Positions 7,521-29,641 of a DNA stretch of 64,000 bases are shown piece by piece. How positions within the stretch are numbered: the first letter of the stretch is position 1; each line of letters opens with the position of its first letter. Under the pieces are notes generated by a model. The model ran no database searches. It was not told where the DNA came from and was given only the letters and a program-made list of their open reading frames with translations. Source of the DNA: Adineta vaga (taxonomy: Eukaryota; Animalia; Rotifera). Made by a program: the position numbers and the translations under genes. The stretch spans positions 16,210,842-16,274,841 of the forward strand of contig CP075495.1 in assembly GCA_021613535.1 (NCBI GenBank), in the 5' to 3' direction.

Positions 7521-8211
7521 TACAAAATCAACTTTTCTACCTGAGTTTTATTAAAGGTATTTTATTTATATAAAAGAAAGATCAAATAAAGATTATTCTG
7601 TTCTGTTCACAATAGTTCTTTTTTATTATAGAGATATTTATTTTCTAATTATGGTAACAGTTGCACTCATATGGTAGATGTCGATAGATTGTTATGACAC
7701 AACAAAAGTACTATATTTTTATCGTTTGTAAAATGTGAAGGAATAAGGGTAAACAAAACGGTATATGGTGAAATTTCAGCTGAACTTTGAATTTATGAAT
7801 AGTAATCCGTCATGTTATCAGATTTATAATACAAAATAACATCTCATAGGATTTAACCATCTGCAATTCATCGTACACTTTACACATAGCACGTATGAAT
7901 CCTGTCTATTATTAATTACACATATATTTAACAATTAACTAGATCGTACGGTATAGCAATGATATCATTTACATATCAAAATGAATTTCCATTTCCTTCT
8001 TACTCAACCCAACCCAATCCAAACCATGACTGAATATTGTAGTGTATCTATGGTATCGTTTATATATAATTATGTTGATCTTAAAAGAACATATTAATGT
8101 ATTTTGCTATATAATGAGACAATTTTTTACGTTAAAATTATTAATTACACGATTAAAGTTGCTTCTTCAAACATTCATATTATAATTAATATTAAAGAAG
8201 AATGTTGAACA

Positions 8212-8323
8212 TTTTGAATTTCCTAGAGATTTATATTGTGGGAAATTCATTTGAATTTCCCAGAAGTTTATCTTTTAATAATTTTTTTTGAATTTCCTGG
8301 AAATGGAAAATTTCCATGCTCTC
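8212..8323. repeat. Three copies of TTTGAATTTCC followed by GGAAATGGAAAATTTCCATGCTCTC; possible transposon end
   Basis: The repeated motif is seen directly. No partner terminus was found in the window. Confidence 0.3.
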
Positions 8324-9164
8324 AACAGCCATTCCAACACAAAACCAACACCTTCATCCTCACCGCTTCCGTTACATCAGAAGAACTGTTTATAAAGTTT
8401 AGTCCGTTGATTAACTGAACTTTGCATACTCTTCATAAAAATAAACACAATGATCTATTCAACAAGTCAGATAACATGGAAAAAAAACAAATATATGAAA
8501 ATATCTATGTATAGTTTCGAACTTTAATGAATGTTCGTAAAATACAGCAGAAAGAGGTTTTCGCGAGAGAAACAAAAAAACATGATAGGAAGATGAAAAT
8601 TCTCGAAACTGCTAAGTCGCATGTAGGCCAAGAATATATATGACGAAATAAGATAAAGTCATATGACAAAGAAATAAAAGAAAACATTCTTTCTACGCAG
8701 TTATCAAATACCAAAAAAAGACGAAATATTTATCCAGGAGAAGTCATATGATGGTAAGAGTAAAGCAAAAAATAAGGTAATACTGATGATAACCGAACGA
8801 GAGAAGATACAACATCATTATGAAATCATGAAAAGAAAACAAAAAACATTATTTCAAACAATAAATAAGCTAATATTAAGAGTGAGAGACAATATGAAAA
8901 AGGTCGGAGTATGGTATATAAATATACGTAAGTATCTACAATAAAAATTAATTCTCACAAAAGATTCTGCAAGGTAAGTGTGAATAATATGAATTATCGT
9001 CATATATTTCTTTAAGGACGTTTTATCAATGTTCGAATTAAATTATCATATCCCAATTCTTTACTCTTTACTCTTTTCTTTTGAGTAGATACACTGCAAG
9101 ATTTATTCTTATAATCTATGTTTCAGATATTTCACATAATTCAGTTATAAAATCAGAAGACAAC

Positions 9165-10600
9165 ATGAAATATAGTAAAACCCCTGCAAGCGAAGAGCAA
9201 GCAGATTTCACTCCGAAACAAATCAAAGGCGAAGATCGACTAGGCACAAAGTAAATACACTATTTACATATTTCAACAATCATTGAAAATATTTTCATGA
9301 TTTAGATCAGTATGGTCGACCATATTCTCACATAATAAAATCAAAGTTATCATCACAGGCTTGATATTGATGTTTATTGTGAGTGGTGTACTGATACTTT
9401 TTGCTTCGTCACAATCACAATGGATTAAAAAAACATCATCTAAAAATGATCAAGGTAAGATTAGAAATCTTTTTTCCTCATAAGTAATAACCCAATTCAA
9501 TAAAAAGAATATCAACTTCTTCATCAATATATTTTCATAGGTGATGTACTCCCTCAACTACGATCATATTCAACAAGACATGAAGTAAACAATTCATATG
9601 TTTATTATTTATCATCTTATAATCATTTTATATAGAAACATCGATCACCAGATACTCTTGGTCATATGAATGTTTACATCAACAAACATAATCATCGATC
9701 AAATCAACGAGTTCGCTTTCCTGTAGCTCGATATAATGATCGTCGTCACTTTCGTTTGTTTTCTTTTCACTCCTTTTCTCTTTCCTATAAGCAACTTTTA
9801 TTTTTTAGCATTACGAGGTCCATTTCTTAATTTTATGCCATGGGTGCCAATATTTGCTGATCGATTAACAAAACAAACAATTATTTATTCACCAACAGGA
9901 GGTAAGTATTCTTGTTTATTACTTAAATTATTTAACAATTCATTTATTATTTTGTTTAGTTTATATTCTTCCACCATTGGTCAATTCATATGGTCAACTA
10001 TTTTCAGTTGCACAACTTATTGCTTCAGGTTATGCTAGTTTAGTTAGTAGTGGATCATCACTCAATGGAAATATTGATATACTTCGTTATTTTCAATCAC
10101 AACCTTGTATGTTTTCTTTTCTCTCTTCATCCACTGATTGATATGTTGTTTATGATAGTGTTGGGTCCAGGTATTCCAGTGATTAACCCTTTGACAGGTG
10201 GCTTTACTGGTGGCATTCATGGTAATTTTGGTTCATTTCCAAAAGCTAGACGCTATGAAGGACGATCAAAGATGGATTATTCACGTGAAAATGAAAATGA
10301 AGATGATGATGATGATTATCGTGGTCATGAACAACAAGAAAGTGAAGAATATAAAGATCGACCTGAATACAATTCATATCGAAACAATAGAAAACCATAC
10401 AACACAAACAAATATACAAGTAAGACATACATACCACCTAGTCATTTGTTCTGACCTATTTCATATTTCTATTCTTTCAATTGACACTGATTGACTTTAT
10501 TTTGTTATAGGAAAAACAATACCATCGACAACCAAATCATCAACAACACTACCACCACCTCAATCATATTTAACCAAATGTGAACCAGAAAAGAAATCTC
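9165..10600 (+). CDS. Gene A, N-terminal module: type II membrane anchor, conserved unknown domain, acidic and Ser/Thr/Pro linker. Exons 9165-9250, 9306-9454, 9541-9584, 9636-9753, 9809-9901, 9960-10106, 10159-10419, 10511-10600
   Basis: All introns are GT..AG and the exons join without stops. TM helix VIITGLILMFIVSGVLILFA. Intron positions and phases match the paralogue at 21706-24637. The last exon ends at a C|GTAAGT donor with no stop codon. Confidence 0.85.
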
Positions 10601-10771
10601 GTAAGTCAATTTGTTTCTTTACATATGAGATATCACAATTCTCATCATTCATAAAATTGATCAAAATAATTCATTTACTTTTTTCCATTAATCATGGTGA
10701 TGATAAAGTTAATTTTCTTTGGATTTGATATGGATAGACTTATATAATTGTATTTTTGTTTTCATCTTTAG

Positions 10772-13700
10772 TAACAAATGATCATAACGGACGAGCATTC
10801 AAAAAACACCATCTTCGTAGAAAAATGAGAACGATATCGAACTCAAAGAAATCTAATACTCCTGGGCTTCTCAAGGGTGCTTATGTCATTCAATATCCAA
10901 CTAACACTCCTGTCAAACAATGTTTTCAGTCAGTAACTAATTCTTTACAAAAAACACACAGAATTAGTAAATCATCAGTTGGACTACGTACTGAAATCAA
11001 ATCATCATTATTTACTGGCATTTCTATTCAAGTAGACGATAAAGATGCTATTGATGCATTAGAAATGATTGAAGATGCTGTTGACGTTTTTCCTGTTACC
11101 ATTATTAAACGTCCACGTCCTAAGAAGAAGTCTGCATTTGTTGATACATTAACAGAAGAACAACTTAAAACATTGGTTCCTCATGATTTAACTGGTGTTG
11201 ATGATATTCACAAACGATTCAAGAATTTTGGTGAGGGTGTTAAAGTGAGTATTTATCTTTTTTTGCTCTATTTTCTGGCATCCAACTGAGCTACACAAAA
11301 TGATTTATTTTGTTTTATTGTAGATAGGTATTATTGATAGTGGTATTGATTATACACATCCAGCACTTGGAGGTTGTTTTGGAGAAGATTGCAAAGTGGC
11401 ATATGGCTATGGTAAGTGATTGAATTTGATTATTTATCGACATACTTAATATAGAGTAACGGATTGTGTAGATTTGGTTGGTGATGCTTATAATGGTAGT
11501 AACACACCAGTAGAAGATGACGATCCTTTGGATAACTGTTCTGATGGTGCTCATGGTATATTTTCTCTTACATATTTCTCTTATTTAGTCTCATAATATA
11601 TAATATATAGGAACACATGTTGCTGGTATTATTGGTGCAAATACGACTGGAATCGATGATCCACTTTATACTCCAGCTGAGCATTTTATAGGTGTTGCTC
11701 CTCGAGCAAAACTTGGAGCATGTGAGTAATGTTTACTCTATATCCAATAGAATATTTATATTATTTTGTATCTATTTAAAAGATCGAATATTTGGATGTG
11801 AAGGTTATGTAACAAGTGGTAAGTATGAATAGTTATATATTGTTACTATTGAATCTGTTTATGTAATATAATTTGCAAATATATTTATTTCTAGATGTGG
11901 AGGCTAAAGCAATCTTTCGTGCTCAAGCTGATGGTATGGATATAAGTGAGTATTTTTGATTATGTCTTCTATTCTTCTCTTTCAAATCTTAATATCAGAA
12001 ACAAGACTGTCGAGGTAATATATCTTTAAGACAGTGACATTAATTAATATATCGTGCAAATCTGTATTTAAATTTAGTCCTTCCTTTGAGATTATCCATT
12101 TTTCATTCAAGTAGAAAATCATATCAATCGAATATCTGATGATGAAAAAATATATGAATGATTTGTGTAAAATAAATTCTGATGTCGTTATAGCATAACT
12201 TAGAGGAATAGTATTGTCTTCTATTCCACGAAATGAGTTATATAAATGATAAGCTGATCCAGAAGTTTTTCTTTCTGCTCAGAAATTGTGATGACTTTTT
12301 AGTTCAGGATCGAAAGTCTGAAATAAGTGTTGCTCTAAATATGAGTTAAATAAAGTAAATGAATTTTTAACTGATTTAATCAGTGTAGTATTTAAACAAA
12401 AATTCTGACTTCTCTATGAAATCGCTCAGTTCTCTGCAAAAATTTCATACTGATTAATTTTTAACATAATTATTATGTATTTAGTAATAATATCAGTCGG
12501 AGGTAATGAGGCTTATCCAGGTGGTGTTGATGCAGTAGCTGTTCAATTAGTATCAGGAGCAGGAGGTGAGTTTTCGTTCTGTTATTCAGTTATATAATCT
12601 AACATTCATCGTAGTTTATATCACAATCTTGGCTGGGGACGAAGGAAATGAGGGTTTGTATAGTACTAATAGTCTTGCAATTGTACCAGGTGCTATGGCC
12701 ATTGGTTCGATCGATAATAAATATACAGCAGCATCTGTGATTATCACACCGGATGGTGAACAAATTGGTTATTTACCTGGACATTATGGTGGATGGACAT
12801 CGAATGTCACCGCAAGAATTGTTGTCCATGGTTAGCTATAACAATGTACATTATTTATATTCTGACTTTAAGTTTTTCTTTAGATCCAAATCGAGGACTA
12901 AATGATGGTTGTAATGGTATAAATAACCCAACTGCAGTCATAGGTGCTGTGGTTCTATTTTCTTTCAAATCTCAGGATACATGTGGCTCTGCTTTTCGAT
13001 GTAATGCGGCAGCAGCAGCTGAGGCAATAGGCTGTCTGGTTTATAATGTTGGTCCTATTTCAGGTCGTATTTCATCCATTCTTTTCTTTTGTTAATTAAT
13101 TATTTTATTGTAGGTTCAGATGTGATTCCAAGTGGAAGTATCAGTTTAACCGATGGTTTAAGCATTGTTGCAACTGTAGCTGAGAATAGTGATGCTCTTT
13201 ATGCTTTCACGGACATGTCTACTGTGATTTCGGTGGTAAGAATATTGAATAAAAAGTTATAGAAAATGTTTCTCTTTCATGATAGAAACATATGAGAAAC
13301 AACAAGTAGCGTAGATAAATCGAAAAATGATGAAGTATATTAAAGACTTATTCTCTGTGAATACATCTGTTTTGGGTATATTTCAGTTTTACTAGTACCT
13401 ACAAAAGAAGTATGCAAAACTTAACCTGATATTTCGTGGATATGAACATGCCCATCGACGTGCACGTATCCAAGATTGGTTTCAAGCTGAGAATTAAGTT
13501 TGACTTTTGTCAAAAGAGATAGACACATGACATCATCTAGAATGCTAACTCGTTAGGCATTTTTAATCTCGTATATTGAATTCAAGGTCAACTATAGAAG
13601 GTTGAATTGCTTAAATTAGGAATAAATATAATTCTTGAACTTACATATAGAATCGCATCGTTTATGTTTGATGCTCATCTAACTATGCAAGTGTAGTTGA

Positions 13701-16256
13701 GAAAGAAAGACAAATTAGAAATTATATAGACAAACATATAATAATTAGAATTTTCAGCTTTCCTTACTTCTTTTTTGTAGTTAAATTGATTCAAATGACA
13801 CTAAAATAATCATCTGACGTTAGATAGTTGACTTGTATATCAAAGCCATTAACAACTGCTAATCTTTGAATAAATCTGTCAGCTATTAATTATAAATATT
13901 CTCCAGTCAAGGAAATTCTGATAATGTGAACTTGCAAACATTTGTTTCTCTGTATGTTTAGGACACAGCTTTAACACCTTCTTTCTCTACATCACTTGGT
14001 CCTACTGGTGATTTAAATTTCTATCCAGGTATAAGTGCCATCGGTGGATATGTGTACTCAACAGTTTCTTCCTATGTTGCTACGATGAGCAAACTGTCAG
14101 CAGCATATAATACAGTTTCTGGTACAAGTATGGCTAGTCCTTATATGGCTGGGTAAGTCTCATTATGTATGTTAATAGAAAATTTCCATCAAATAATCAA
14201 TCACATACTGATAATAGTTGGATTTTAATTACTAAAATGATCATAAACAATTATTTTGATTTTTGATTCATTTAGATTTCGATAATTAATATAACTTGTT
14301 TTTTGTTTCTACTTGAAGAATATTAGCACTATTCTTATCCAACATTGATAATCCTCCTCCATACACAGTTAACGGTACTGCATCAAATGGTAAATGTCGT
14401 CCGAAGTTCTCTCTTGTCAAAGATATATTTCAATCAACTGCTCATATGGTCAATATATACAATTCTTCACTTCTTGCTAGTGCTATTCAACAAGGAGCTG
14501 GACTAGTACAAGCTAACAAAGGTATCACTACTACAACTCTCGTCTCTCCAAGTACACTCTCACTAAATGATACAGTGAGAAAACACTCATCATACAAAGT
14601 TACCGTAACAAATATTGGAAATACAAAAGCTATGTATAAAGTGAATCATGTTGGAGCAGCACTTGCTACCGGATTAGCAGTATCAGGTATCGAAACACTT
14701 CTTGTTGAAACCATCTATTCTGAAGATTTCGCTGTAAGTTGCAAATTAGCAATTCATCTAAATTAACCAGAGAATCCAGGAAATAAACGATAAAGATGAA
14801 TTTTGGATAGTAAAAGAAAGGGAAATATATTCGTTTATTTACTAATTTTAAAGATACTTTTCTTATATATTTTACTCATATAAAATCTTTTTGTTATTGT
14901 AACATATTCCAGAAAGTAATTATTTACCCATCTAAATTTGAACTTCAACCTGGAGATACACAAAAAATAACACTTGGATTCCATGAACCTTCGAAAGCTG
15001 ATCGAAATCTTCTTCCAGTATATTCTGGTTATATTAATGTTCAAAACACAAACGATAATGAAACGACTCATGTTTCATGTAAATCCTTTAGCTTGATCAT
15101 TTGATTTCAATATTACTTTATCTTTATCTTTATTTGATTTGTGTTGAATAGATGCTGGTATAGTAGGTGATTATAGTAAACTACCGATTACTTTTCAAAA
15201 TTCGGCTGACGGATATATCACAGGAATCCAAGATGTGAATGGAACTTATGTGACTGATGAACCAATTTCAACATTAAATTGTACTGAAAGGTGTTTTATC
15301 ATTGTGGTACTGGCATATCCAACACGACTTCTTAAAGTAGAAGCTATTTCAACAGCAGATGATACAAAGTAACACTCATTTGGCTGTTAACTCTTTTAGT
15401 TATTCCCAAAGATAGGAAGTTTTTCTTAGTACACTTTCACTTTTTCGAAAGTAATTGTTCTTCATTACTCCTAGAGTTTCTCAACTACTTATTCTCATCA
15501 GAAAAAAATATAGTTATAAACTTTCAGGAGTCCTATGAATAGTTGCTGAATCTCTTTATTAACAAATAATAAATTAGTTGCATTTTCTAAAGAATAAATA
15601 AACTTTAGTAGTTATAAATTTGATTAATTTAATACTGACTATTGATGATCAGCTGATTTCATTAGAAATAGAATAGGAAAATGTGAAAAAGTGATGAGAA
15701 TATTTCCATTATTCATTGATACTCTTCCCTAGATCTCTTCGATAATTAGAATAGAGTGACGTACTTGCAAGAGAAAAAAAGTCACATTCTTCAACATTCA
15801 AATGGCCCCAAATTATTGAGAGCAGCTTAAAATAAACACAGATGTCCGAATAAATTTTCTGCTCACTCTCTGCATCTAGAATTTGTTTTCGGTATATAAA
15901 CTTGTATGTTTATAAATGGATGTAGTTCTCGAAAAATTATTTCTTTATTTTCCAGTCATGGTGTGCTATATAGTGCGGAAGATTATTATTTCGACATACC
16001 TGGCGACCTAATCGGTTATCATTATGCTGAAGACTTGCCAAGAAATTTGCCAACTTCCTTCCCTTATTATGTAATGACCTGGTATGGTGAAACTGGTAAA
16101 ATATCAATGACAGAAGAACAACCAGATGGTCCAGTTACTAAACTTCCTGACGATCAATACAGGATTCAGTTTTCAGTCCTTCAACATTTTGGTGATCCAG
16201 CAAATCCAAGTGACTATGCGGTTTATCACTCACCACCGTTCAATCTTGTTCAGTAA
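10772..16256 (+). CDS. S8 subtilisin-like serine peptidase, fungal Vpr/pyrolysin-like type (propeptide, catalytic domain with PA insert, Fn3-like/DUF1034 domain); probably the C-terminal part of gene A
   Basis: Exons 10772-11244, 11324-11411, 11472-11555, 11611-11721, 11783-11818, 11895-11945, 12485-12565, 12615-12830, 12884-13063, 13114-13235, 13962-14152, 14319-14733, 14913-15078, 15152-15368 and 15956-16256 splice in frame. Triad motifs IIDSGIDYTHPALGGCFG, HGTHVAGII and GTSMASP are present, plus QQGAGLV and LPVYSGYI. Confidence 0.9.
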
Positions 16257-16493
16257 CTAAACATAAACATTAATCATTACTTCATTTCTTTTAAGATTTC
16301 TTTTCGTAACGACTCTTTCATCTTTCGTCCTTTTCTATTTATTATTGATATAATCATGGAATTCAACTAATCATACAGAAATAAAACAAAAAAGTTTGAT
16401 CGTATCGAAGTTGTGAATATAACGGGTGCGTCAGAATAGATGGCGGTCTCAGTATTTTCTTTACTGACATCTCGCTCATTTCTCTCCCGAGTA

Positions 16494-18666
16494 CACTGTA
16501 AAAAAAAAGGAGTTTTGCCGAACCATAAAAGGATCTTCCCCTCGATACACGGTCCGATCCTTTTTTGGATTCGTAATACAATAGTTCCGAGTAGAACCTT
16601 TCTCGGAAAATAGCGATCAAAGGTTCAGTAGCAAAAGGTTCCGTCCGGAACCATTTAATTAACCAATAATAAAAGGTTTCGTACGAAACCAATTAATAAA
16701 TAAATCGCTGAAAGGTTCCGTTATCGCTCATAGCAACGAAACTAATCATCTAACAAAAAAAATTTTGAGAGCACATCTCTCGAACACTCCTTTCGGACTA
16801 TTAATAGACGGACCGCCGGTTGATAGGTCGACGGTAGGTGGACGAGATGAATGACCCTACCAGATGAACTAGTAAAAAACATAAAAATGAAAAATGTAGA
16901 AATATTTTCAAGGTCTCACCTGACGGACTATTGATAGATTGACGGCGGACGAGATGAATGATCATAGCTGACGAACTATTGAAAAATATAAAAATGAAAT
17001 GGAAATGAAAAATGCATGGATATTTATAAGCTCTCACCTGACGGACTATTTATAGGTCTACGTCCGGCTCTATCAATAGTCTTATATTTGAATTGTATTG
17101 TGAGATGCTTTGAGGAATATTCAACAGTGCTTTCAACACTTTTAATAGCTCGTCTCGTGCCTGCCAGAGTGGCGTCTAGAATCAAGTATATCAGCGTGGT
17201 CATAGCTATTGGTGGCTCAGTGTAGGTTATACGGAACTATCTGCACTGTTGTGATGTATACCAAATTATATGTCGTTGCCCGTTAGCTTTGCCAAACTAT
17301 TACCGATTAATGGCGACCGCTAGTCGTTTGAAAAAAGATTGCCCAGAGCTATACGGGATGACACCAAACTATTGTCGGTTCAGTAGGAGAGAAACAGAAC
17401 CTTCTTTATAATCGCTGGGTTGCTGATAGTTTCGTATAAAATATCCTGGACCACTGTGAAACACAGTCAAGCGTCTTTGGTTTCGTGCACAACATTCAGA
17501 ACTATCAGGAGTTGGGTGCCGAACTTCTGACGAGTTGCAGGTACTCCGGAGGATTGGTATGTGTTTTACGAAATTGTGAACCGTCTGATACGAAGCCTAC
17601 CAAACCTGCAAAGGTTTGGTGGAAATATTAATTAACTCTCAAGGACATATCAATATATGATTAGTTTTGTGTAACTAGTACTAAACCTTCAGTCTTTGCA
17701 CTGAATCCTATGGGGTTGGATGGGAAATGCTCTAAACTTTCCTAAAAGTGACGAAACCATCGATGTTCGGTATGAAACTATCGGAACCTTCATATAGTAT
17801 AGAAAATATACTAAACGTATTGTTTGACTATGAAATGGTTAATAGTTCCGTGAACACGTGACAGAACTATGTATGGTTCTGTATAAATTGTGCTTTACCT
17901 TTATGTCTTTGTACGAAACTATCGCTCGTTTTGTCTTGATAAGCGAAACCTTTATGTGAATAATTGGCTGATGAAAAGTTTCGCATGAAGCATACTGGAC
18001 CTTCATAAACGTAAATAAACTGTTCCTGGTTCAGTAGATAATAGACAGAACCATCGCTAGTTTGGTCATGAATTTACTAAACTTTTGAGAAATTTCGAAG
18101 CTTTTAAAGATTCGTCCAAGTTATACGAAACTAAGAGCCGATCGGCATCGATTTTACCGAACCTTTAAATGATATACTAAACCGTGAATGGTTTCGGATA
18201 GATTCTACTGAGCTTTGAAGGATTTGCAAACTTTGCATTGGTTTCGAGTAACTGGCGCCAAACCTTTAGTACATATGCGTAACCATGTCTCGTTCAGATA
18301 AAAATATTCTGAACTTTTCGAAAAGTGCCGAACCTTCGATGGTACAGTACGAAATATACTGAACCAGCAAGTGGGCTAAGAAACCAGGAATAGTTTCGTA
18401 GAAAATAGACTAAACCTTTCTTCAAAGTGCGAAACCGATGATAGTTCTGTGGACATGTTACTGAACTATCAATGGTTTAACGAGCCACATAAAAAACCTT
18501 CAGATAGTTTTTTTCGAGAACCACCGAACCTTCTCGGTTCTGCTGAACTTAAAATAGTTAAGTAGATCAAGCACGAAACCTTTTCCATTTTTCTGAACTT
18601 AAAATCGATCGGTGACAGCACAGGAAACCTTTTAGGTTCGGTAAAACACCAATTTTTTTTACAGTG
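16494..18666. mobile_element. Non-autonomous CACTG-terminated (CMC/EnSpm-like) DNA transposon
   Basis: TIRs CACTGTAAAAAAAA..GTTTTGCCGAACC..AAAAGG and CCTTTTAGGTTCGGTAAAAC..TTTTTTTTACAGTG, with TA on both flanks. The interior is full of degenerate (C)CGAACC/GGTTC(G) motifs in both orientations. No transposase ORF. Confidence 0.85.
16795..17055. repeat. About 2.2 tandem copies of a ~120-bp unit inside the CACTG element
   Basis: The unit GGACTATT..GACGAGATGAATGA..ATAAAAATGAAA..TCTCACCTGAC repeats directly. Confidence 0.7.
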
Positions 18667-18668
18667 TA

Positions 18669-19900
18669 TAAAAACACGTATTAATGAGCACTTGGTAGAT
18701 CAAAGAAAATATGTACCTTTAACTGTCAAAATACCAGAAATAACATTAAATTTAGATCAATTACAAATTACAACACATTCTACTGATAATGCTAATGTAA
18801 ATGTAATACCAAACAAACCTGTGATTCAAAATGTTTCCGATCAGAGGACACTATTACAGAAGCTACCCGCTTTATCCATTAAAACCAAAAAAAAGAACAG
18901 TAAATTTGATAAAAATAAAGTACAAAAGAAGGTTAATAAAAAAAATCAAAAGTTAAAAAAATCGCAAACATCCTTCAAAAGGCTGACCTTGATGAAGTAC
19001 TTGAAAATACTGTTCAACATCAACCAAATAAAAATAAATTCACCAATCAATCAGCATTAAGCAAACATTATATTTCAACTGGACATCTGTTCAAATATGA
19101 TGATTTTAAAATAGTGTTATCGGAAAAACATAAATACAAGTTGTTAATAAAAGAATCTTTACTGATAAAACAGAAGAATCCAGAATTAAATAAAACTGTT
19201 CGTTCATTTCCATTATACATTTATCCCGACGGACCACCACCAAAGAACAGACCAAATATCAACCCAGTTCCTCCAACTACAATAACTACTAACCAAATAC
19301 AAAGTAACGAAGCTACTTTCTAGATTAGATGATGTACACTAGTTCTGTTTTAGATCACCCACCAACTATCAACCTATACCCTATCAACTCATAACCTATC
19401 CATATTATCATCCAAAACAGCCTGCAAAGTAAAGATCCATCCCTTCATTTCATATCCTACAGAAACTACTATTAGAGATAAACCCCAGCAAATATAACCC
19501 ACAATCTACATATCACCACAAAACAACAACTTTGCGTACTCCAACTATACTTATCCAATACTTCACATACCACATTCCATTATCAACTAAAAACAACAAA
19601 ATCCTTCGCATTAAATCCACAATAGCAAATAAACCACTCAACATTCAAACATTCAGTTAGCTCCTCTCAATCAACCCTAATTATTCTATCAATCATTTAA
19701 TACATTAAACTATGTTTTCCTCATTATATTCTTACTCACTTCTATTACATTATTATTTCATTATTAAACTCTGTCCATTCTTCATTAGCTTATATAGTCA
19801 TTATCATTAACATATTAACATATTTGGTTGAAAATGATCGAAAGAAGATCGAAAATTTTCGAAAGCAAATAAAATTTTGTTTTGAATTCATTATCTACTA
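18669..19900 (+). mobile_element. Penelope-like retroelement 3' fragment (frameshifted GIY-YIG endonuclease C-terminus and 3' region)
   Basis: Translates to IKTRINEH ... QSALSKHYISTGHLFKYDDFKIVLSEKHKYKLLIKESLLIKQKNPELNKTVRSFPLYIY, typical of the PLE GIY-YIG C-terminus. Confidence 0.8.
19821..19870 (+). ncRNA. Degenerate minimal hammerhead-like motif (U3-A8 variant) of the PLE fragment
   Basis: TTGAAAA-T-GATC(gaaagaa)GATC-GAAA-ATTTTC. Stem II and a palindromic stem III are present, but stem I does not pair contiguously. Confidence 0.45.
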
Positions 19901-20749
19901 TTTCTTCATTATTATCATTATATATTATAAATTGTTAAAAAATTTCTCATGTTCATCTATTTATCATGACATAAATGATCCTAATGTTCATATATAAATG
20001 AATCGTGAATATGGTAAAAATTGAATATCTCCTTCTAGAGTCGCCAAGGGCAGCTAATATTTTAACCTTATTATATTGGCGGTGAGAGCTTTCTTTTGAT
20101 GTAAGAATATCTAGTCTTTTCGCCCAACAATACACACACTTCCATTGTCAGAAATAATTGCATGGATAAAAAGTTATAAAATCCATTTTTTGACAAAATC
20201 TGAGGGATACCAGGGGTATTTTGTTCGATGTTCAAACCGGCAAAAACCGTCGCAGACCGACCGCTTGAATCATTCCAGCTGGTCCGTTCCGGCACCGATT
20301 ACAACTCTGAGCAAAGAACTCATTCGATGTAAGCCATCCAACAAACCTAATGGCATTATCAACTAAGACAAAAAACTACTCGACCAAGTCTAACAACCAT
20401 TTTTCTTTCACATTTCGATGATATCTATATAACACTTAGACTACTTTCACTAGACTAAACAAAATTTCTTCTAACATATTTCTTCTTTTCATTGAATATA
20501 TTCAACATCTAGTGCCCTCTTTCTACTACTCTATACATTATCATCAAATACATAGTCACTTTTTCTTTCTTCATCTAAGATCATATATCGATTTACCTCA
20601 TTCAAACACCACCATCAAGCAACATCATTATATTCTTTTTTGTGTGATATCTATTGTTCTTTACTTACTATTAAGTTAGTTTGTAAAGATCTGTATGTAT
20701 TATTATAATTCGTTTATGATTTTCGTAATCATTTAAAACAATTATAGCA

Positions 20750-21174
20750 GAGTCGAAGCCAACTGAGGATGACATTTCTTTACAATGGGGAAATCGTGAA
20801 ATTCGTAACGATCTTGGCATCCGTGACTCGCACCCTCACCCTCACAATAACATGGGTAAGTGTGTGCGGAGGGTGTCGATGTGACTTCCTTAGTATGGGT
20901 CGTCTCAGGTGTGAGTGCAGGTGTCGGCGGTTTATTGTGCACTCATGCTCATAACCGTTTAAGACCGTTGGAGACGCTGTTTCCGACGGCTGGAATAATT
21001 GTCCTGCGAACAGTGATCATTTTGTTTTGGAAAGCTATGAGTTAAGCAAAAGGAATTTAGCCGCATCTTTGCAGGAAGTCGCCAGGTCAATTCTTTTTAC
21101 CATTCACACACACAAAAATACTTCTGCCTTCCACAGTCGAGGGTTAAGTGAGCCGAAACAGCGAACTTTAATTG
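20750..21174 (+). mobile_element. Helentron-associated non-autonomous element (HINE), 3' part
   Basis: Ends in CAGTCGAGGGTTAAGTGAGCCGAAACAGCGAACTT, homologous to the Helentron end at 49749-49790 and to the HINE end at 22063. The 5' boundary is uncertain. Confidence 0.65.
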
Positions 21175-21705
21175 TTTGTGTTAACAATGACGAGATTGGT
21201 GAGAGAGAACTACCATATTAAAGTAAAGAGAATTATATCAAAATAAATATAGAGATAAAAGCTCTAGCAAATTGCTGAATAAATACACAGGTAAAAAAAA
21301 GATGAAGACAGAAAGAAAATGAAGATAAATATAATGTCTTTTCAGTATATTAAATAGAGTATCTGTATGTTGCAAATTGTTTTATTAAATAGAATGATAT
21401 GGTAATAAAAAGATAGATGAAAATTTGTTAACCTAAGAGATAATAGAATGATTAGAAAAAGAACAGTATAAGCAATAAGTTACATGATGTTTGCATTACA
21501 TTTGCTCGACAATACAGATAAAATAATCATAAGATAGATAAAAGAGAAAGAGAAGATTAGAAAATTATATATAGTGCAATTAAAAACGAAATTGTAAGAA
21601 AAGATTTTATAAGGTAAGAGTAAAATAAAAAAACATGTTTTATGTTTTTTATATTAAATTTTTACATATATTTGATTAATCTATTTCTGTTTTAGATATA
21701 TCGCT

Positions 21706-24637
21706 ATGACATCGATTGATAAAACGAAATATAGTGAAGTAACTACAAATGATGAACGAGCAGATTTCATTTCGACAGTAACTCAAAAAGAACATCGATT
21801 AAAGAAACAGTGAATATTTTAGATACATACATTACAAATAAAGTTAAGTATATCTTTGTATTGTCTTTAGATCATTATGGTCAATCACTTTCCCAGAAAA
21901 CCGAATGAAAATCATTTGCACATTTCTGATGCTTATTTTTATTGTGATTAGTGTGATACTATTCTTTAATTCGTCTCAATCATCATTATCTAAAAATATT
22001 TCTGCAGAAAATGATCAAAGTAATGAATATTTCAAAGTTATGATTTATCACTCTGTAATCTACAAGTAACGCTCGCCGTGTCGACTCACTCAGCTCTCGA
22101 ATGTGGAGGACACTTATTTTTTGCGTGTGTCAAAAGTAAGACAGGTGGCTTAGCAGGTTTATATACGAGGAAACGGCTCAAATGTTTCTCCTCAATTATT
22201 TCTTAATTTCCTAGAACAGAAAACTGAATTTTTCCTTAAAAGTCATTTCCATCAAAACCTAACTATACAACTCCACCCATACCGCCACCCAGAGTTTCAC
22301 ATACCAGCTAGGCCCATATTCCCGTCCATAGTCTGACCCAAAATCCACCCATGATTTCACTCATCACGCAGGTGCATACCCTCACCCACCATCCCCAACC
22401 CATAGTCTCACTCACCATCCACGTCCATATCCGCATCCATGGTTTCACCCAACATATAGGCCATACTCACTGAAACTAATTTCAAACCAGCCTTCACCCA
22501 AATGTTTTTTTGACCTTTGACCTTGACACAAATTTACAAACAAACGAACTATTTTTTCATATGAGCCTCCTTACAGTCGAGGAAACAATAGTACCCAAAA
22601 GGATATCATACCATAAAAGGATATATTCTGTCCTTATTTATTACTTTCTCCTTGTTTGATAATTTGTCCTTATTTCGCATGCTATTCTTTTTATCTTTTG
22701 TTCGACTCTTTTTCGGAGGCGTATACAAATACCTCTATTTTATAAGACCAATACGAGATGCAATAAGAAGAAAGGCACGACGACGCAATACAATAAGCAC
22801 TAGAGCCACTTCAATCTAACAGCGTCGCAAGCAACCCACACCCTCGCTGTTCTATCCAGAGATGGGCAACTTCGCGAGTAAACAACTCCAACTTCATTTC
22901 AACTCCGATTTATAAAATCCAAATGGAATGAACATTAAACTTAAAAAGAATGCTTTTAACATTAATTTAGATTTACTACGAACATCAATAATAATCATTT
23001 GTCATTTACAGAAGTTTTATATCTTTGCAAAATTTCCATAGATGTAATAGATTTGAGTCAATCGATCACGATTACATTTGATAAATGTTAGTTTAGCTAA
23101 TGTATCTCTTGATATCTCTATTTTTCTCTTTCGTTGCATTTAGCTAAGATCCCCTATATAGTTTTTTTTGTCGTTCTTTTATTAGTCATAACATCAGTTA
23201 TAGTTCAACTGACGTTGGAAAATAGTGCCAACTCCAACTCCGCTCAGAAGCATTCGAACGCCACTCGAACTCAATACCCCATTAAAAACAAATCTATACC
23301 ATCTCAACACCCACTCCAGGAAAAATCATTAACTCAGGAACTGAAGTTGCCCATCAATGATTCCATCCACCATAACTTCTGTCTGCCGCCATCCAAACAC
23401 ACACCCACTAAAAACATCAACCCATCATACAAGCAATACTTCGCCACCTGAGCCCACATCTTCACCGTCACCCTCACCCGCCAACCAAACCTACGATTAA
23501 AATTTCCACCAAGCTCCACACACTCATCTATGTTCTCACCCTCACCCTCACCCATATCCATACACCCCACTCGACGTTGCCCCATTCTACTATCAATTTT
23601 CGATGTTAGGGACTATTTTAGAAAAAATGTTTTTTTTGACCTTTGACCCTAACACAAATTTACAAACAGACAAACAGACAAACTTCTTTTTTTTTCGTAT
23701 GACCCTCCTTACAGTCGAGGGAATAAATAATGAATAACTTTTTATAGCAGATACAATTCTTCAACTACGATCCCATAAAAAACGTGAAGTAATTGATTTT
23801 ATATCTATTTATAATTCATTTATTTATTTCCATTTATTTATTTGATAGAGACGTCGATTACCAGATACTCTTGGCCATATGAATATTTATATAGACAGAT
23901 ATAATCGAGACAAATATTATCCACATCGTTTTCCAGTTGCTCGATATGATCGACGTCGCATGCGTTCGTTTTATTTTGTTTGTTGTCTTTATTGGACAAG
24001 TTTCATTTTTATTTCTATTTTCTAGCATTACGTGGTCCATTTCTCAGTTTTATGCCACGGGTTCCTATATTTGCTGATCGATTAACTAAACAAACAATTA
24101 TATTTTCATCATCAGGCGGTATTAAATGTTTTTAATGAATTGTAGTAATAATTTTGTTATTTTATTTTTAGTTTATATTCTGCCACCGTTGATCAATATC
24201 TACGGTCAATTATTTTCAGTAGCTCAACTTATTGCTTCAGGTTCTGCAAGTTTAGTAAGTAGTGGATCAGCATTGAATGGAAACATTGATATGCTTCATT
24301 ATTTTCAACCACAGCCTTGTAAGCTTTTATTATCTTTATTTATGATTATTGTAAGATATTTTGTTACTGTATCAATTAGTACTTGGTCCAGGTATTCCTG
24401 TGATCAATCCTTTAATAGGTGGTTTTACTGGTGGTATGTATGGTAATTTTGGTTCATTTCGAAAAACTCGAGATTATGAATCACCATCAAATATTGATTA
24501 TTCATATGAAAGAGATGATGATGATGATAGTTATGAGGAAGAAGAAAGAAAACCAAACCGTTATCGACGTCCATACAATTCATATAGAAATACCAGAAAA
24601 CCATATAAGACAACCAGATATTCAAGTACAATATCGA
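21706..24637 (+). CDS. Gene B, N-terminal module paralogous to gene A. Exons 21706-21809, 21871-22019, 23748-23788, 23849-23963, 24026-24118, 24172-24318, 24380-24637 (or 24625)
   Basis: Same intron positions and phases as gene A. TM IICTFLMLIFIVISVILFF, then KKRERRR (furin-like site). The conserved domain is 92/107 aa identical to gene A by manual alignment. Ends at a phase-1 donor (A|GTGAGT at 24638, or A|GTACAA at 24626). Confidence 0.85.
22063..23725 (-). mobile_element. Two HINE-type (Helentron non-autonomous) pieces in intron 2 of gene B, about 22063-22590 and a second piece ending at 23725
   Basis: The terminus CAAGTAACGCTCGCCGTGTCGACTCACTCAGCTCTCGA matches the reverse complement of the Helentron end. 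SubTIR CCTCCTTACAGTCGAGG occurs at about 22566 and 23704. TGACCTTTGACC and CAAACAGACAAAC microsatellite motifs and a C-rich interior are present. Confidence 0.7.
22857..23359. mobile_element. hAT-type MITE nested in the HINE
   Basis: TIRs CAGAGATGGGCAACTTC and GAAGTTGCCCATCAATG. Flanks GTTCTATC / ATTCCATC give an 8-bp TSD with 2 mismatches. Confidence 0.7.
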
Positions 24638-25018
24638 GTGAGTCAAAAGTTGCCTAACAGTTTGTTTTGGATACCATATATGTCAGGTTCAGAGAACCGT
24701 CATGTCTACACCTTCTTTTTTCAGCAGTATCTTCAAATGAACTAAAAATTTGGATTTACTATTGATTTTACTTATGAATTTTCAGATGTATACACCAAAT
24801 CACAGACAAATTTTTTACATGATACCACGAACGTTCTTTGAAGAACTGTTCAAGATGACTATGAGTAAATAAGAGTCATGCTTACATGTACCCTTAAAAC
24901 TATACTCGCATACACTAATAGAAAGCAGAAAAGTGTTGTATTTGAATAATATTTTGTAATATTAGGATCTTTAACATTGTCTATATTTCTATTTTGATTC
25001 TCTATTATTCTGTTTCAG

Positions 25019-27327
25019 CATTGGGTCCAACAGTTACTGTCTTAGTGAAGAATAACGATACAATTGACATAGTTAACAGTTACACGTGTTTGGTGTCTGT
25101 ACTGAATTTAAGAGCTACAGATAATTCTACAGTGACCAATGCTTGCGCACTTCATCAACTGAATATTGAAGCCAATGAAAATGCAAACGTCACTTCAACA
25201 CCATTATCATGTCCAAAAACTATCAAAGTTCATGCTACAGATGCAGCTCATGTCAATGATATATGTGCAATAGATTTTATGAAGATAGAAAGCGAGGATA
25301 AATCTATCGTCACTATTGACTCAACATCAACATGTCCTAAAATGACTGTTGTTATAGCTATGGACACATCTGAAGTTCAAAATATCTGTGCTATCAATCA
25401 AATGAATATAGTGGTATTTCTGGCTAATAATATTACATTTAACTCAGATTTGTCATGTGCAAAAGTTAGTACTTTTGATATGTCATTTGTTGGTTTCGTT
25501 TCCGATCTTTGTCCAAGTGAAGAAATGAATATAGCAGTTGCTTATACACCCACTGTTTCTATTAATTCATCACTTGCATGCTCAAAAACGGTTCAGCTTG
25601 ATGCTCATGACACGGGTGCAATTTCCAATCTCTGTGCCAGTGAAGTAATAAATATAACAGTTATTCGTATAGGTCCTCTTACTATTAATTCAGCAACTGC
25701 ATGTCCGAAAAAGGTTCTTCTTGATGCTAAGGACATGAACGGAGTTTTCAATCTTTCTGCAAGTGAAAAAATGAATATAAAAGTTATCAATACAGGTCCT
25801 CTTACTATTAATTCAGCAACTGCATGTCCGAAAAAGGTTCTTCTTAATGCTAAGGACGTGAACGAAGTTTTCAATCTTTGTGCAAGTGAAAAAATGAATA
25901 TAACAATCAAGCAAATGAGATTTCTTATTATTAATTCAGCAACTGCATGTCCAGAAAAGGTTTTTCTTGATGTTGAAAACGTAGGTGAAATTTCCAATCT
26001 TTGTGCAAGTGAAGAAATGAATTTAAAAGTCACGAGGATAGGGCCTACTTCTATTGATTCAGCAGCTGCATGCCCAAAACAAGTTATTCTCGATGCTCTA
26101 ATGATCGGTACAATTTCCAATCTTTGTGCAAGTGAAGAAATGAACATAACAATTGCTAATATATGTCCTCTTACTATTGATTCATCAACTGCATGTCCGA
26201 AAAAGGTTCTTCTCGATGCTAAGCACATGAACGGAGTTTTCAATCTTTGTGCAAGTGAAAAAATGAACATAACAGTTGCTAATATAGGTCCTCTTACTAT
26301 TGATTCATCAACTGTATGCCCAAAAAGAGTCGTTCTCGGTGCTAAAAAAATAGGTGCAGTTAGCAATTTATGTGCAAGTGAAGAAATGAATATAACAGTT
26401 ATCGAAATAGATTCTATTTCTATTAATTCAGTAACTGCATGCCCAAAAAGAGTCGTTCTCGATGCTCGATACATGGGTGCAGTTAGCAATTTATGTGCAA
26501 GTGAAGAAATGAATATAACAGTTACTTATATGGAACCTCTTATTATTGATTCATCAACTGCATGCCCAAAAAGAGTCGTTCTCGATGCTCGATACATGAG
26601 TGCAGTTAGCAATTTATGTGCAAGTGAAGAAATGAATATAACAGTTACTTATATGAAACCTCTTATTATTGATTCATCAACTGCATGCCCAAAAACGGTT
26701 CTTCTTCATGGTAACATCACAGATGGAATTTACAATCTCTGTGCAAGTGAAAAAATGAATATAACAACCGCTAATATAGATACTGTCTCTATCGATTCAT
26801 CAAGTGTATGTCCAAAAACAGTTGTTCTTAATGCTATTCAAACGACGAATATTTCGGATATTTGTGCGAGTAAAATACTAAATATGATCTTACAAGATAC
26901 TATGGTTGCTTTGAACTCATCGTGGCAATGCCCAGCATTAACTGTTCTTAATATTACACAGAATAGTTCTGTCGTGAATATTTGTGCAGAAGAGTCATTG
27001 AAAATTGAAGGCTCTGATTCAACTGTTAATGTTAGTACATCTAGCTGTCCTACATTTGCCGCTGTCACAGGTACAGATAGATTGACTGTTCATGATCTTT
27101 GTTCATTGAATGAAATCCATATTGATGTTACAAATTCTACAATATATATGGAAAGAACAACATGTCCAACTATTGCAAATGTCATAGCAACTGAATCAGC
27201 ATTAGTATATGTTTGTGCTACGGTGGCAATCAATGCAATTGTATCGGAAGATGCAACAGTATACTATCAAGGGCCATTGAATCATACAGACACAAGTAGT
27301 GGTGGTGTATTATTAACATGGCCATAA
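25019..27327 (+). CDS. Large terminal exon encoding a Cys-containing 41-aa tandem-repeat beta-solenoid with a GIN/DUF2807-like C-cap; probably the C-terminal part of gene B
   Basis: The ORF has no ATG at its start but has a strong acceptor TTCTGTTTCAG|CA in phase 1. About 17 units of CPKxVxLDAxxxxxVxNLCASEEMNITVxxxGPLTIDSxTA. Ends VCATVAINAIVSEDATVYYQGPLNHTDTSSGGVL, resembling the DUF2807 C-terminus. Confidence 0.8.
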
Positions 27328-27415
27328 AGCTTATTCAGAAACTACTCTGTACAGACATCTATAAACAATCCAAAAATCAATATCTTTACATGATGTAATA
27401 TAACAACTAAGCCCT

Positions 27416-27922: not shown

Positions 27923-29641
27923 ATGAGTTACATAATGATTGTTACAATTGTGCTTATTTTTCTACCACTGCAATGTTTGTTGGAGAGAACAACAATATCA
28001 AATGATCGTCTCAATATTGCTTATCAAGCAATGAATGTTAATCATGTTCAAAGATCATCAATAACGATTCATGATTTAATTCAAAATTTCTTAATATTAT
28101 TTATTATTATTCAAAGTTCCGAAGATATTGAACGAATAATTTATACCATTCTTCGACTTTGTCTACCATCAAAATCACATCCAACACTATCATCATTATC
28201 AACTGATAATGAATATCCTATGGTTGCTATACAATTACCTATGATGAATGAAAAGGAATTTTGTATTTCAATGATTACATGTGCTTGCAATTTAGATTGG
28301 TCAAAAGATCGTTTAATTATTCAAGTATTAGATGATTCTACTGATGAAATAGTTATGAAAATGATTGATCAATGTGTACATGAATGGTTTGATCGAGGAT
28401 ATCGAATTAGTGTTATTCGACGTCAAAATAGACAAGGTTTTAAAGCGGGAAACTTGAAAAATGGATTAGAAAAGATTCAAGAATGTGAATTTATTGCATT
28501 ATTTGATGTTGATTTTTTGCCGAAGAAAAATTTTTTATTAAAAACAATACCTATTCTTATAAAAGATCCAAAAGCAGCCTATGCACAAGCAAGATGGACA
28601 TTTATAAATGGAAAAGAATCATTATTAACACAAATGCAAGAAATTGTTCTCAATCATCATCATAAATGCGAACAAGAGGTCAAATATCGTATGTCTTCTT
28701 TCTTTCAGTTTAATGGATCTGCCTGTGTTTGGCGAACAAAAGCTATTTATCAATGTGGAGGCTGGCATACAGATACTTTAGTAGAAGATTTAGATATTTC
28801 AGTTCGAGCTTATATGAATGGTTGGCATTCTGCTTATGTAGTCGATGTTGAATGTCTTAATGAACTTCCACCTACATTTAGCGCCTATCTTTTACAACAA
28901 TATCGATGGTTCAGTGGACCTGCACAAGTATTTCGAAAATTATTTCAAGCAGTTTGTACAACTTCTCACATGAATATTTATCAAAAATTACATTGTTTAT
29001 GGATGCTTTTTCGACCATGTCTTTATATTATTCGTTTTATTATATTTCTATTGAATATTGCCATCAATGCTTGTTTACAAAAAACATCTTATGTGAATAT
29101 GTTTATTACATTTTTTCCAATACTTCTAAGTTCAAATATTTTGTATTATACATCGGAAAAAATTCATCTAACGATCGTCTATTCTCTTTTTTGTAATGCC
29201 ATGTTATTTCATCATGCGATTTCTGCAATAGCAGGCTTTCTTAATTTGAATTCTGCTAAAAAATGGATTGTTACTCCAAAATTTGGCACTCAGACACATT
29301 TAAATATTGAAGAAAAACAAATTGATCCTTACCGTAATGACAATACAAATGTTCAATATTGTAACCAATGTATTCATTCGATTGTATCCACAGAAAATAC
29401 GTTATTGCTATGGAATATAATTAAAAATATTATCATATCACAAACTTCAATTTTTCTTACGATTCGGCACAAATTTAACTATTTGCAAATTCATAAAGGA
29501 TATTTAGTTATGACTTTGTATATTTTTGTATTTTCATATGTCGCATTTCTGAATGAACAATATCTTATTAGTCTACATTTGATGTTAAATGCATTTACTT
29601 ATACTGTATTTACATTCGGATATTTAGGTAGATTTGAATAA
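27923..29641 (+). CDS. Processive GT2 glycosyltransferase, cellulose-synthase-like CslA/CslC type (glucomannan/beta-glucan synthase-like); intronless
   Basis: Motifs PMVAIQLPMMNE, LDWSKDRLIIQVLDDSTD, RQGFKAGNL, FDVDF (DxD), QARW, FNGSACVWR, VEDLD, QQYRWFSGP (QxxRW) and WIVTPK, with multiple C-terminal hydrophobic helices. Confidence 0.9.
   Translation: MSYIMIVTIVLIFLPLQCLLERTTISNDRLNIAYQAMNVNHVQRSSITIHDLIQNFLILFIIIQSSEDIERIIYTILRLCLPSKSHPTLSSLSTDNEYPMVAIQLPMMNEKEFCISMITCACNLDWSKDRLIIQVLDDSTDEIVMKMIDQCVHEWFDRGYRISVIRRQNRQGFKAGNLKNGLEKIQECEFIALFDVDFLPKKNFLLKTIPILIKDPKAAYAQARWTFINGKESLLTQMQEIVLNHHHKCEQEVKYRMSSFFQFNGSACVWRTKAIYQCGGWHTDTLVEDLDISVRAYMNGWHSAYVVDVECLNELPPTFSAYLLQQYRWFSGPAQVFRKLFQAVCTTSHMNIYQKLHCLWMLFRPCLYIIRFIIFLLNIAINACLQKTSYVNMFITFFPILLSSNILYYTSEKIHLTIVYSLFCNAMLFHHAISAIAGFLNLNSAKKWIVTPKFGTQTHLNIEEKQIDPYRNDNTNVQYCNQCIHSIVSTENTLLLWNIIKNIIISQTSIFLTIRHKFNYLQIHKGYLVMTLYIFVFSYVAFLNEQYLISLHLMLNAFTYTVFTFGYLGRFE

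Follow-up and report, generated by a model that had tools for sequence, protein, structure and literature searches.

A phase-1 membrane-anchor exon block reused on varied, partly foreign-type proteins in Adineta vaga, a bdelloid rotifer

Type II transmembrane serine proteases (TTSPs), including matriptase, hepsin, enteropeptidase and corin, carry a cytoplasmic tail, a signal anchor, a modular stem and an extracellular C-terminal protease; phase-1 modules are their building blocks, and cleavage frequently sheds or activates them. A comparable layout is encoded in the terminal 64 kb of chromosome 2 of Adineta vaga, a bdelloid rotifer (contig CP075495.1, positions 16,210,842 to 16,274,841; this whole stretch of 64,000 nucleotides (nt) is referred to below as the window). 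Here, two paralogous blocks of exons, each encoding a membrane anchor and a beta-rich domain and termed the module, precede two different downstream proteins, or payloads: an S8 subtilase in copy A and a solenoid of 41-amino-acid (aa) repeats in copy B. The window very probably holds two members of an Adineta exon-shuffled gene family, in which the 5' anchor-domain block is spliced in phase 1 to varied payloads. The module is a new domain family, and its reuse as an N-terminal anchor block on foreign-type payloads is unusually clear and partly recent.

The likeness of copy A to the TTSPs is one of architecture only, since the TTSP protease has the S1 chymotrypsin fold whereas that of copy A is a fungal-type S8 enzyme, which places copy A outside the TTSP family. 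SEA, LDLa, CUB and SRCR domains make up TTSP stems, but no relative is known for the stem domain of the module, and the module anchor, unlike that of the TTSPs, also bears payloads that are not proteases. A second likeness is to class 1-1 exon shuffling (Patthy's rule), in which symmetrical phase-1 exons are combined with unrelated partners in an extracellular context. The module differs from this rule in that a whole N-terminal anchor-plus-domain block is shuffled rather than an internal module, in that the process apparently belongs to one bdelloid lineage, and in that several of the partners are of fungal or bacterial type. Brush-border type II ectoenzymes, such as aminopeptidase N, DPP4 and sucrase-isomaltase, likewise hold a hydrolase above the membrane by means of a signal anchor and a Ser/Thr-rich stalk, but they possess no common module and do not form a shuffled family, making this comparison an analogy only.

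For the payload of copy A, the closest described proteins are fungal pyrolysin-like S8 proteases with PA and Fn3_5 domains (Powellomyces, Spizellomyces), which match it in domain order, motifs and clade at 41-42% identity. The fungal and Rotaria S8 proteins begin with a cleavable signal peptide, whereas in copy A, a gene with 22 introns, about 330 aa of anchor, domain and stalk precede the protease. Finally, an N4-cytosine methyltransferase fused to a chromodomain has been described in A. vaga (PMC8885841), and it resembles the module genes in joining a foreign catalytic domain to a host-type module within the same species; it is, however, a single nuclear enzyme, whereas the module is reused on many payloads of the secretory pathway. 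An earlier, sequence-only reading of the window had not recognized the architecture as one already described, and full-text searches of bdelloid literature yielded no description of the module; such fusions are not mentioned in a preprint on a bdelloid fungal pathogen either.

Module copies and their junctions

The two fusions are made up as follows.

9165..10600, plus strand: module copy A, eight exons, by exact spliced mapping of GenBank UJR29596 (P0137)
9165-9250, 9306-9454, 9541-9584 and 9636-9753, plus strand: copy A exons 1-4
9809-9901, 9960-10106, 10159-10419 and 10511-10600, plus strand: copy A exons 5-8, followed by the payload exon at 10772
9346-9402, plus strand: signal-anchor helix of copy A (Kyte-Doolittle 19-residue mean 2.9)
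9636..10240, plus strand: beta-rich domain of copy A, exons 4-7 including introns, about 130 aa from the LGHMNVY to the GNFGSF motif
10772..16256, plus strand: payload A, S8 subtilase, 15 exons, joined to the module in phase 1
21706..24637, plus strand: module copy B, seven exons with the intron positions of copy A, without the stalk exon
21706-21809, 21871-22019, 23748/23751-23788 and 23849-23963, plus strand: copy B exons 1-4
24026-24118, 24172-24318 and 24380-24637, plus strand: copy B exons 5-7, followed by the payload exon at 25019
21911-21967, plus strand: signal-anchor helix of copy B (Kyte-Doolittle 19-residue mean 3.2)
23849..24461, plus strand: beta-rich domain of copy B, exons 4-7 including introns
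25019..27327, plus strand: payload B, solenoid, a single exon of 768 codons, joined to the module in phase 1

The sequence-only reading had placed two paralogous exon cassettes with matching introns and one transmembrane helix each at these positions, and this description is borne out. The exon plan of both cassettes came out alike whether derived by peptide matching or by exact spliced mapping, the positions and phases of their introns are identical, and each copy encodes one hydrophobic helix that follows a hydrophilic start and has Lys/Arg on its N-terminal flank. In copy A, the cytoplasmic tail and signal-anchor helix are followed by a PQLRSY motif with a basic juxtamembrane segment, the beta-rich domain, an acidic Tyr-rich linker and, lastly, a Ser/Thr stalk exon (10511-10600) with a TKCEP motif; its donor phases, read from the spliced mapping of UJR29596, are 2,1,0,1,1,1,1,1. 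The stalk exon belongs with the S8 genes, as it is also present in S8 paralogues that carry the transmembrane anchor only.

Both cassettes terminate at a phase-1 donor located 5' of the first in-frame stop (10726-10728 in A; 24655-24657 in B), as had been proposed. Their core is identical at 91 of 107 aa, or 85%, against the 86% estimated earlier by hand, with a synonymous divergence (dS) of 0.43, a nonsynonymous divergence (dN) of 0.084 and a dN/dS of 0.20. The flanking exons have dN/dS values of 0.44-1.05, and the similarity of the four introns compared is no higher than that of shuffled sequence. This pattern agrees with the earlier suggestion that a core conserved amid diverged introns is under selection.

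The joining of copy A to an S8 subtilisin at 10772, likewise anticipated, is found in GenBank, where module and protease are modelled as a single gene, I4U23_010814, with the junction 10600>10772. An exact match to the window was obtained for each of its three isoforms, UJR29596-98 (1239, 1022 and 874 aa), and the peptide across the junction reads ...EPEKKS-L-TNDHNG, the Leu codon being split by the intron. The order and phase of module and S8 are kept in paralogues on contigs 1, 5 and 3. Both payload exons had been thought to lack an in-frame ATG of their own. In copy B, the first one occurs about 87 codons into the exon; exon 10772 of copy A, contrary to that reading, does contain one, at 10825-10827 (codon 19), and no signal peptide follows it.

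For copy B, no GenBank model was present among the protein search matches, and the evidence for its junction comes from reads, which were compared with positions 21600-27400. The joint 24637>25019, as predicted earlier, is present in transcript contigs of four runs from two studies, and a 719-nt contig of run X4 crosses it with 219 nt of module and 500 nt of solenoid and 0 mismatches. Transcript contigs also carry the GT..AG joints 21809>21871, 22019>23748/23751, 23788>23849, 23963>24026 and 24318>24380, and every predicted intron of copy B is matched by a GT..AG joint; at intron 2, the acceptor is either 23748 or 23751, a difference of 3 nt. No contig was found on the large intron or the junction intron of copy B, and depth inside the introns is zero. 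The runs were taken as transcripts on account of these GT..AG joints and empty introns.

Contigs of runs X1-X3 depart from the window (21775-26880) at some 30 sites and have 3 nt deleted at 24514, and X4 is exact; the differences are strain or allelic variants or come from contigs of close paralogues. Loose contig ends at 23849 and 23889 run on into paralogue sequence. Intron 2 of copy B (22020-23747) measures 1.73 kb, the remaining introns of the module being 50-60 nt long, and contains two repeat copies, with ends at 22505-22588 and 23631-23726, that are 81-91% identical and probably represent an inserted element.

Payloads, their origins and shuffling of the module

The 49-aa module exon occurs in 28 copies in the A. 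vaga genome. A profile of 18 copies, searched against 1.84 billion representative proteins, yielded 135 clusters, and all of the clusters looked up that had a source name came from A. vaga, A. steineri or A. ricciae. The exon typically lies at about residues 100-280 of the long members and once at residues 467-515 (P0021). Tabulation of the downstream domains, as the sequence-only reading had proposed, gave at least 15 Pfam-distinct payload types 3' of the module in these three species; the converse outcome, homologues found always alone or with one fixed partner, is not what the family presents, since the partners are varied, although some members are payload-free. The payloads identified with Pfam, and one further kind, are:

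Peptidases: Peptidase_S8 (with PA and Fn3_5), Pro-kumamolisin/S53, Peptidase_M28 with PA, and A1 aspartyl protease
Other hydrolases: Abhydrolase_1/Abhydrolase_4 and Abhydrolase_10
Oxidases and cupin: two kinds of multicopper oxidase, Cupin_1 and flavin amine oxidase
Binding or repeat domains: SBP_bac_3, NHL, FG-GAP and MORN
Further payload: Thr-rich mucin-like repeats

At one locus (L043), the last module exon and the FG-GAP domain form one unbroken open reading frame (ORF). For the last five genomic copies, the payload is known only through the GenBank proteins P0114 (MORN) and P0054 (M28+PA).

The join itself obeys a strict rule. The payload acceptor is in phase 1 in 8/8 mapped GenBank models and likewise in copy B, and the donor phases of the module in the eight mapped models are 2,1,0,1,1,1,1, with a further 1 for the stalk exon where present. 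A tree of the module was built from exon-wise alignments joined side by side (153 columns, 23 copies). Within it, the modules of three S8 genes, three solenoid genes and an NHL gene form one shallow clade (82/88), in which those of the solenoid and NHL genes are nested (98/97), and a second S8 lineage (L034) and the remaining copies, which differ in payload from one to the next, have long branches whose order is unresolved. The module tree is thus in conflict with payload identity, a signature of exon shuffling, and together with the uniform phase-1 boundary this upholds the earlier proposal of that process. On the simplest reading, the module may have been fused to S8 long ago, after which module and payload would have diverged together; more recently, a duplication would have placed the 5' portion of an S8 gene of the A type onto solenoid and NHL exons. 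In the window, 12 kb separate the presumed donor (A) and recipient (B) types, which share one strand.

Payload A begins with a propeptide, has a PA insert within its catalytic domain and resembles Fn3_5 in its C-terminal part. Pfam assigns Peptidase_S8 (PF00082; 6e-33, 114.8 bits against a cutoff of 21.8) and also PA to P0006, and fn3_5 to the window ORF at 14446-14766, and the S8 motifs IGIIDSG, HGTHVAG, GNEG and GTSMASP, with the Asp, His, Asn and Ser residues, are intact in P0137. Its nearest non-rotifer relatives are chytrid fungi, at the 41-42% identity given above, and no non-bdelloid animal is found among the best 120 S8 matches of 8000 candidates considered. In the S8 tree, a bdelloid clade (support 100) is sister to the Spizellomycetales (93) and nested within the chytrids, and the module-bearing S8s make up one clade (99) inside it. 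Taken as a whole, the nesting in chytrids and the absence of animals from the best matches indicate that the S8 payload is horizontally acquired and of fungal type.

The S8 proteins also document a change of export signal. Their chytrid and Rotaria homologues begin with a classical signal peptide, and the Adineta S8s begin with a transmembrane anchor, which some combine with a Ser/Thr stalk only and others carry within the full module. This difference is the clearest evidence that a host block replaced the export signal of the donor.

Among the introns of payload A, nine of 14 are in phase 1. Most exon sizes (84/87, 111, 36, 122 and 191 nt) are common to payload A and the divergent paralogue L034, from which it follows that these introns are older than the split between the two module-bearing S8 lineages.

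Payload B is a Cys-laddered parallel beta-helix. Its 36 Cys residues are spaced alternately by 18 and 23, giving the 41-aa period noted in the sequence-only reading, and it carries 22 N-glycosylation sequons against a shuffled mean of 12.8. An AlphaFold2 (AF2) model has a predicted local distance difference test score (pLDDT) of 92 and matches beta-helix proteins at Z up to 19, with curli CsgA, tailspikes, autotransporters and RsaA scoring Z 17-19. The same reading had likened the solenoid to GIN domains, a likeness borne out only at the level of the fold. Pfam returned only a sub-threshold DUF6999 match (17 bits against a cutoff of 27) and no DUF2807, and a Foldseek search with the solenoid gave no match at E < 0.4. 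The entries 3LJY, 3PET and 3JX8 are presumably DUF2807 structures, although their deposited names are those of putative adhesins or a lipid-binding protein; at Z 13.6-14.0, they score below the beta-helix proteins just named. Identification of the solenoid as a GIN/DUF2807 head domain is not supported, only the general parallel beta-helix fold being common to them.

The module-solenoid architecture recurs in two A. ricciae proteins (P0157 and P0015) and in two more A. vaga copies. A protein search with the solenoid recovered three relatives, all from Adineta, so that a foreign origin is not shown for this payload; the earlier description of both payloads as foreign-type is therefore upheld for the S8 protease only. 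In the A. vaga protein I4U23_027628 (P0158), a solenoid follows a signal peptide and precedes a multi-pass, apparently seven-transmembrane, region, which suggests that payload B is itself a reusable ectodomain.

For the other payloads, foreign origin is suggested to be frequent, though not universal. The solved structures closest to the TAP-like hydrolase payload bear the names Hip1, carboxylesterase A and secreted hydrolases, and are presumably of mycobacterial and actinobacterial origin, and those closest to the three-domain oxidase are laccases and Fet3, here assumed to be the fungal proteins. Bacterial glutamine-binding proteins are the closest to the solute-binding protein (SBP) payload. 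The structure closest to the S53 payload is tripeptidyl-peptidase 1, which is an animal protein too.

Topology, the beta-rich domain and rival readings

From their N-terminal sequences, the anchored members are predicted to be type II (signal-anchor) single-pass proteins. The hydropathy peak (Kyte-Doolittle 19-residue, 2.05-2.92) starts at residues 39-57 in all eight full-length members tested, as in P0157 (2.84 at residue 45), and Lys/Arg residues occupy the N-terminal helix flank in seven of the eight, P0190 being the exception. The first 40 or so residues are hydrophilic, and the anchored members have no cleavable N-terminal signal peptide. Further sequence hallmarks of a C-terminus predicted to lie outside are the sequons and Cys ladder of the solenoid and the secreted-enzyme families to which payloads belong. 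Just outside the membrane, the PQLRS(Y) motif is kept in most anchored members; the basic cluster that follows it is loosely conserved and seldom a canonical convertase site, R-E-R-R in copy B being an exception.

The beta-rich domain is confidently modelled. AlphaFold, given a 31-member alignment, produced a mainly beta structure with a pLDDT of 87.4 and a predicted template-modelling score (pTM) of 0.83. No Pfam family was found for it in module exons or module-only proteins, and searches with the model were blank: the best E was 0.25 with Foldseek against the PDB, the best Z was 3.2 with VIA-align against 48,161 chains, and the ESM Atlas gave TM scores of at most 0.38 by shape and no match by features. 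The domain thus appears to be undescribed, although blank searches with a model do not prove a new fold. In a second subfamily, it occurs after a classical signal peptide, with low-complexity sequence rich in Thr, Tyr, Gly or Asn and no payload. An R-K-K-R site often immediately precedes the domain in these secreted proteins, and one of them matches the Pfam family New_glue. Two copies of the payload-free secreted form (L044/L045; C5:13465500-13479999) are a near-identical tandem pair, 4.4 kb apart, with Tyr/Gly-rich tails and a basic site immediately before the domain.

In the proposed mechanism, the anchor would supplant the signal peptide of the donor, such that the payload enters the endoplasmic reticulum (ER) while the N-terminus stays cytosolic. 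The payload would then be kept outside the cell by the domain and the acidic Tyr-rich linker, together with the Ser/Thr stalk in those members that have one, and proteolysis at juxtamembrane or basic sites may free it. Shedding by a convertase, as put forward in the sequence-only reading, may occur at a basic motif that is loosely conserved in the anchored forms.

Such a mechanism would be of wider relevance. No other animals have as many horizontally acquired genes as bdelloid rotifers, and the route from a fungal or bacterial secreted enzyme to a correctly targeted animal protein is rarely documented. The module offers a checkable mechanism, in which one host exon block gives the ER entry signal, the tether and the stalk and is joined repeatedly, always in phase 1. 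The clearest case is the chytrid-type subtilase, whose Rotaria relatives still rely on a signal peptide alone. Another product of the family is a conserved domain that is modelled with confidence yet has no Pfam family or structural match, and the passage of the module from S8 to solenoid and NHL genes, with donor and recipient 12 kb apart in the window, is an example of recent, datable exon shuffling. As the genes are already public as 'hypothetical proteins', the advance lies in recognizing the family and its logic, not in new genes.

Several points weigh against this account. Topology, surface location and cleavage are predictions, most anchored members have a basic motif that does not form a canonical convertase site, and MORN repeats, which are usually intracellular, fit surface display poorly. 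Fusion A rests on public annotation and conservation; the runs that span copy B are labelled only 'RNA?'; and the fusions at loci L035, L037, L039 and L046 were drawn only from same-strand adjacency. Some payloads, such as S53, look metazoan, and the existence of payload-free secreted members suggests that the domain has a role of its own beyond that of 'anchor'.

A bolder extension of the same account, which can be offered only tentatively, is that the module may be a lineage-specific 'domestication adaptor', a landing pad giving acquired ORFs a secretory address and a surface tether; as a corollary, the fold of the beta-rich domain would be new, and the domain would itself serve in binding or assembly outside the cell. 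If true, module-bearing genes would be strongly enriched for foreign origin, and this would help to explain how Adineta has domesticated foreign secreted enzymes.

The role of the domain also underlies the rival explanation that survives best, which is possible but doubtful. Here, the beta-rich domain would be the functional core, binding to or assembling into extracellular material such as an adhesive, an eggshell or a cuticle-like matrix, to which the enzymes are targeted, and the anchor would be a transient export device removed by proteolysis. Consistent with this, the domain follows a classical signal peptide in short, payload-free secreted proteins, one of which matches New_glue, and in this subfamily a canonical R-K-K-R immediately precedes it; likewise, oxidative cross-linkers are found among the payloads (two multicopper oxidase kinds, an amine oxidase and a cupin), the linker is Tyr-rich, and the strongest constraint falls on the domain. 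On the other hand, it has no known binding partner or matrix, most payloads (peptidases, hydrolases and solute-binding proteins) have no evident link to cross-linking, and the anchored forms lack a canonical convertase site. A matrix role for the domain overlaps with the anchoring of payloads at the surface, and the two are mutually compatible.

It is far less probable that the module is functional only on S8 genes, with copy B and the other odd fusions being recent, decaying chimeras produced by subtelomeric segmental duplication. The setting would suit such an origin, as the window is a transposon-rich chromosome end, the module of copy B derives from an A-type S8 module, inserted elements are present in copy B intron 2 and in the junction intron of L030, and the solenoid has diverged more quickly than the module, copy B and L031 being 72% identical in the former and about 94% in the latter. 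Decay, however, is contradicted by the 768-codon exon of copy B, which is intact, transcribed and correctly spliced, and by the purifying selection on its module core. Moreover, the module-solenoid fusion is also found in A. ricciae and in three A. vaga copies, and old, deeply diverged modules occur on many other payloads.

Finally, the notion that the cassettes and the downstream genes are separate neighbours, their joined forms being read-through or conjoined transcripts or merged predictions, is hardly credible: the junction introns are long (171 and 381 nt, against 50-60 nt within the module), exon 10772 has its in-frame ATG at 10825-10827 and the GenBank model of L030 (P0001, 300 aa) ends shortly after the module, but frame and phase are kept in 8/8 models and in copy B, the payloads themselves lack a signal peptide, unlike their Rotaria and fungal homologues, the architecture is kept in three species and in old, co-diverged paralogues, no contig lies over the copy B junction intron, and in L043 module and payload share one ORF.

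As a means by which the family of exon-shuffled anchors might have spread, retroelement transduction was considered; the paper on Penelope elements consulted for this (PMC3846280) deals with non-ribosomal peptide synthetase (NRPS) and leucine-rich repeat (LRR) genes rather than the module family.

Surroundings of the window and further copies

The window has a G+C content of 30% and short introns, and the proteins encoded in it are A. vaga GenBank entries with I4U23_ locus tags. Pfam searches of the ORFs between the two fusion genes and inside the large intron of copy B gave no match. One further gene lies just 3' of copy B:

27923-29641: glycosyltransferase family-2 (GT2) ORF (Glyco_tranf_2_3, 1e-21), intronless, 572 aa

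The same GT2 gene is also located 3' of the solenoid paralogue at L031, indicating that module, solenoid and GT2 gene were duplicated as a block. At a further solenoid paralogue (L030; C5:1143000-1152999, at about 4500-8720 of the locus), about 4.8 kb separate the module from the solenoid exon. The inserted stretch, which lies in the junction intron, is flanked by inverted copies of one sequence and is transposon-like, and the GenBank model of this locus (P0001) enters the insert and ends there.

Tandem family members are also found at L039 (C1:15179000-15188999), about 2 kb apart, where a module with Cupin_1 is followed by a diverged module with flavin amine oxidase. Like the window, several family members with the closest modules are situated near contig ends, namely at C1 16.34/18.15 Mb, C5 16.17/16.93 Mb and C3 18.64/20.35 Mb, and at 1.15 and 2.03 Mb of C5. 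Lastly, diverged module exons were found in an environmental eukaryotic contig of 1.49 Mb and 46% G+C (ERZ26165376 in the ENA, 734884-747309; L049), where the module precedes an Abhydrolase_1/4 (TAP-like) domain 52% identical to that of A. vaga, and the module may thus be present outside the AT-rich genomes of Adineta.

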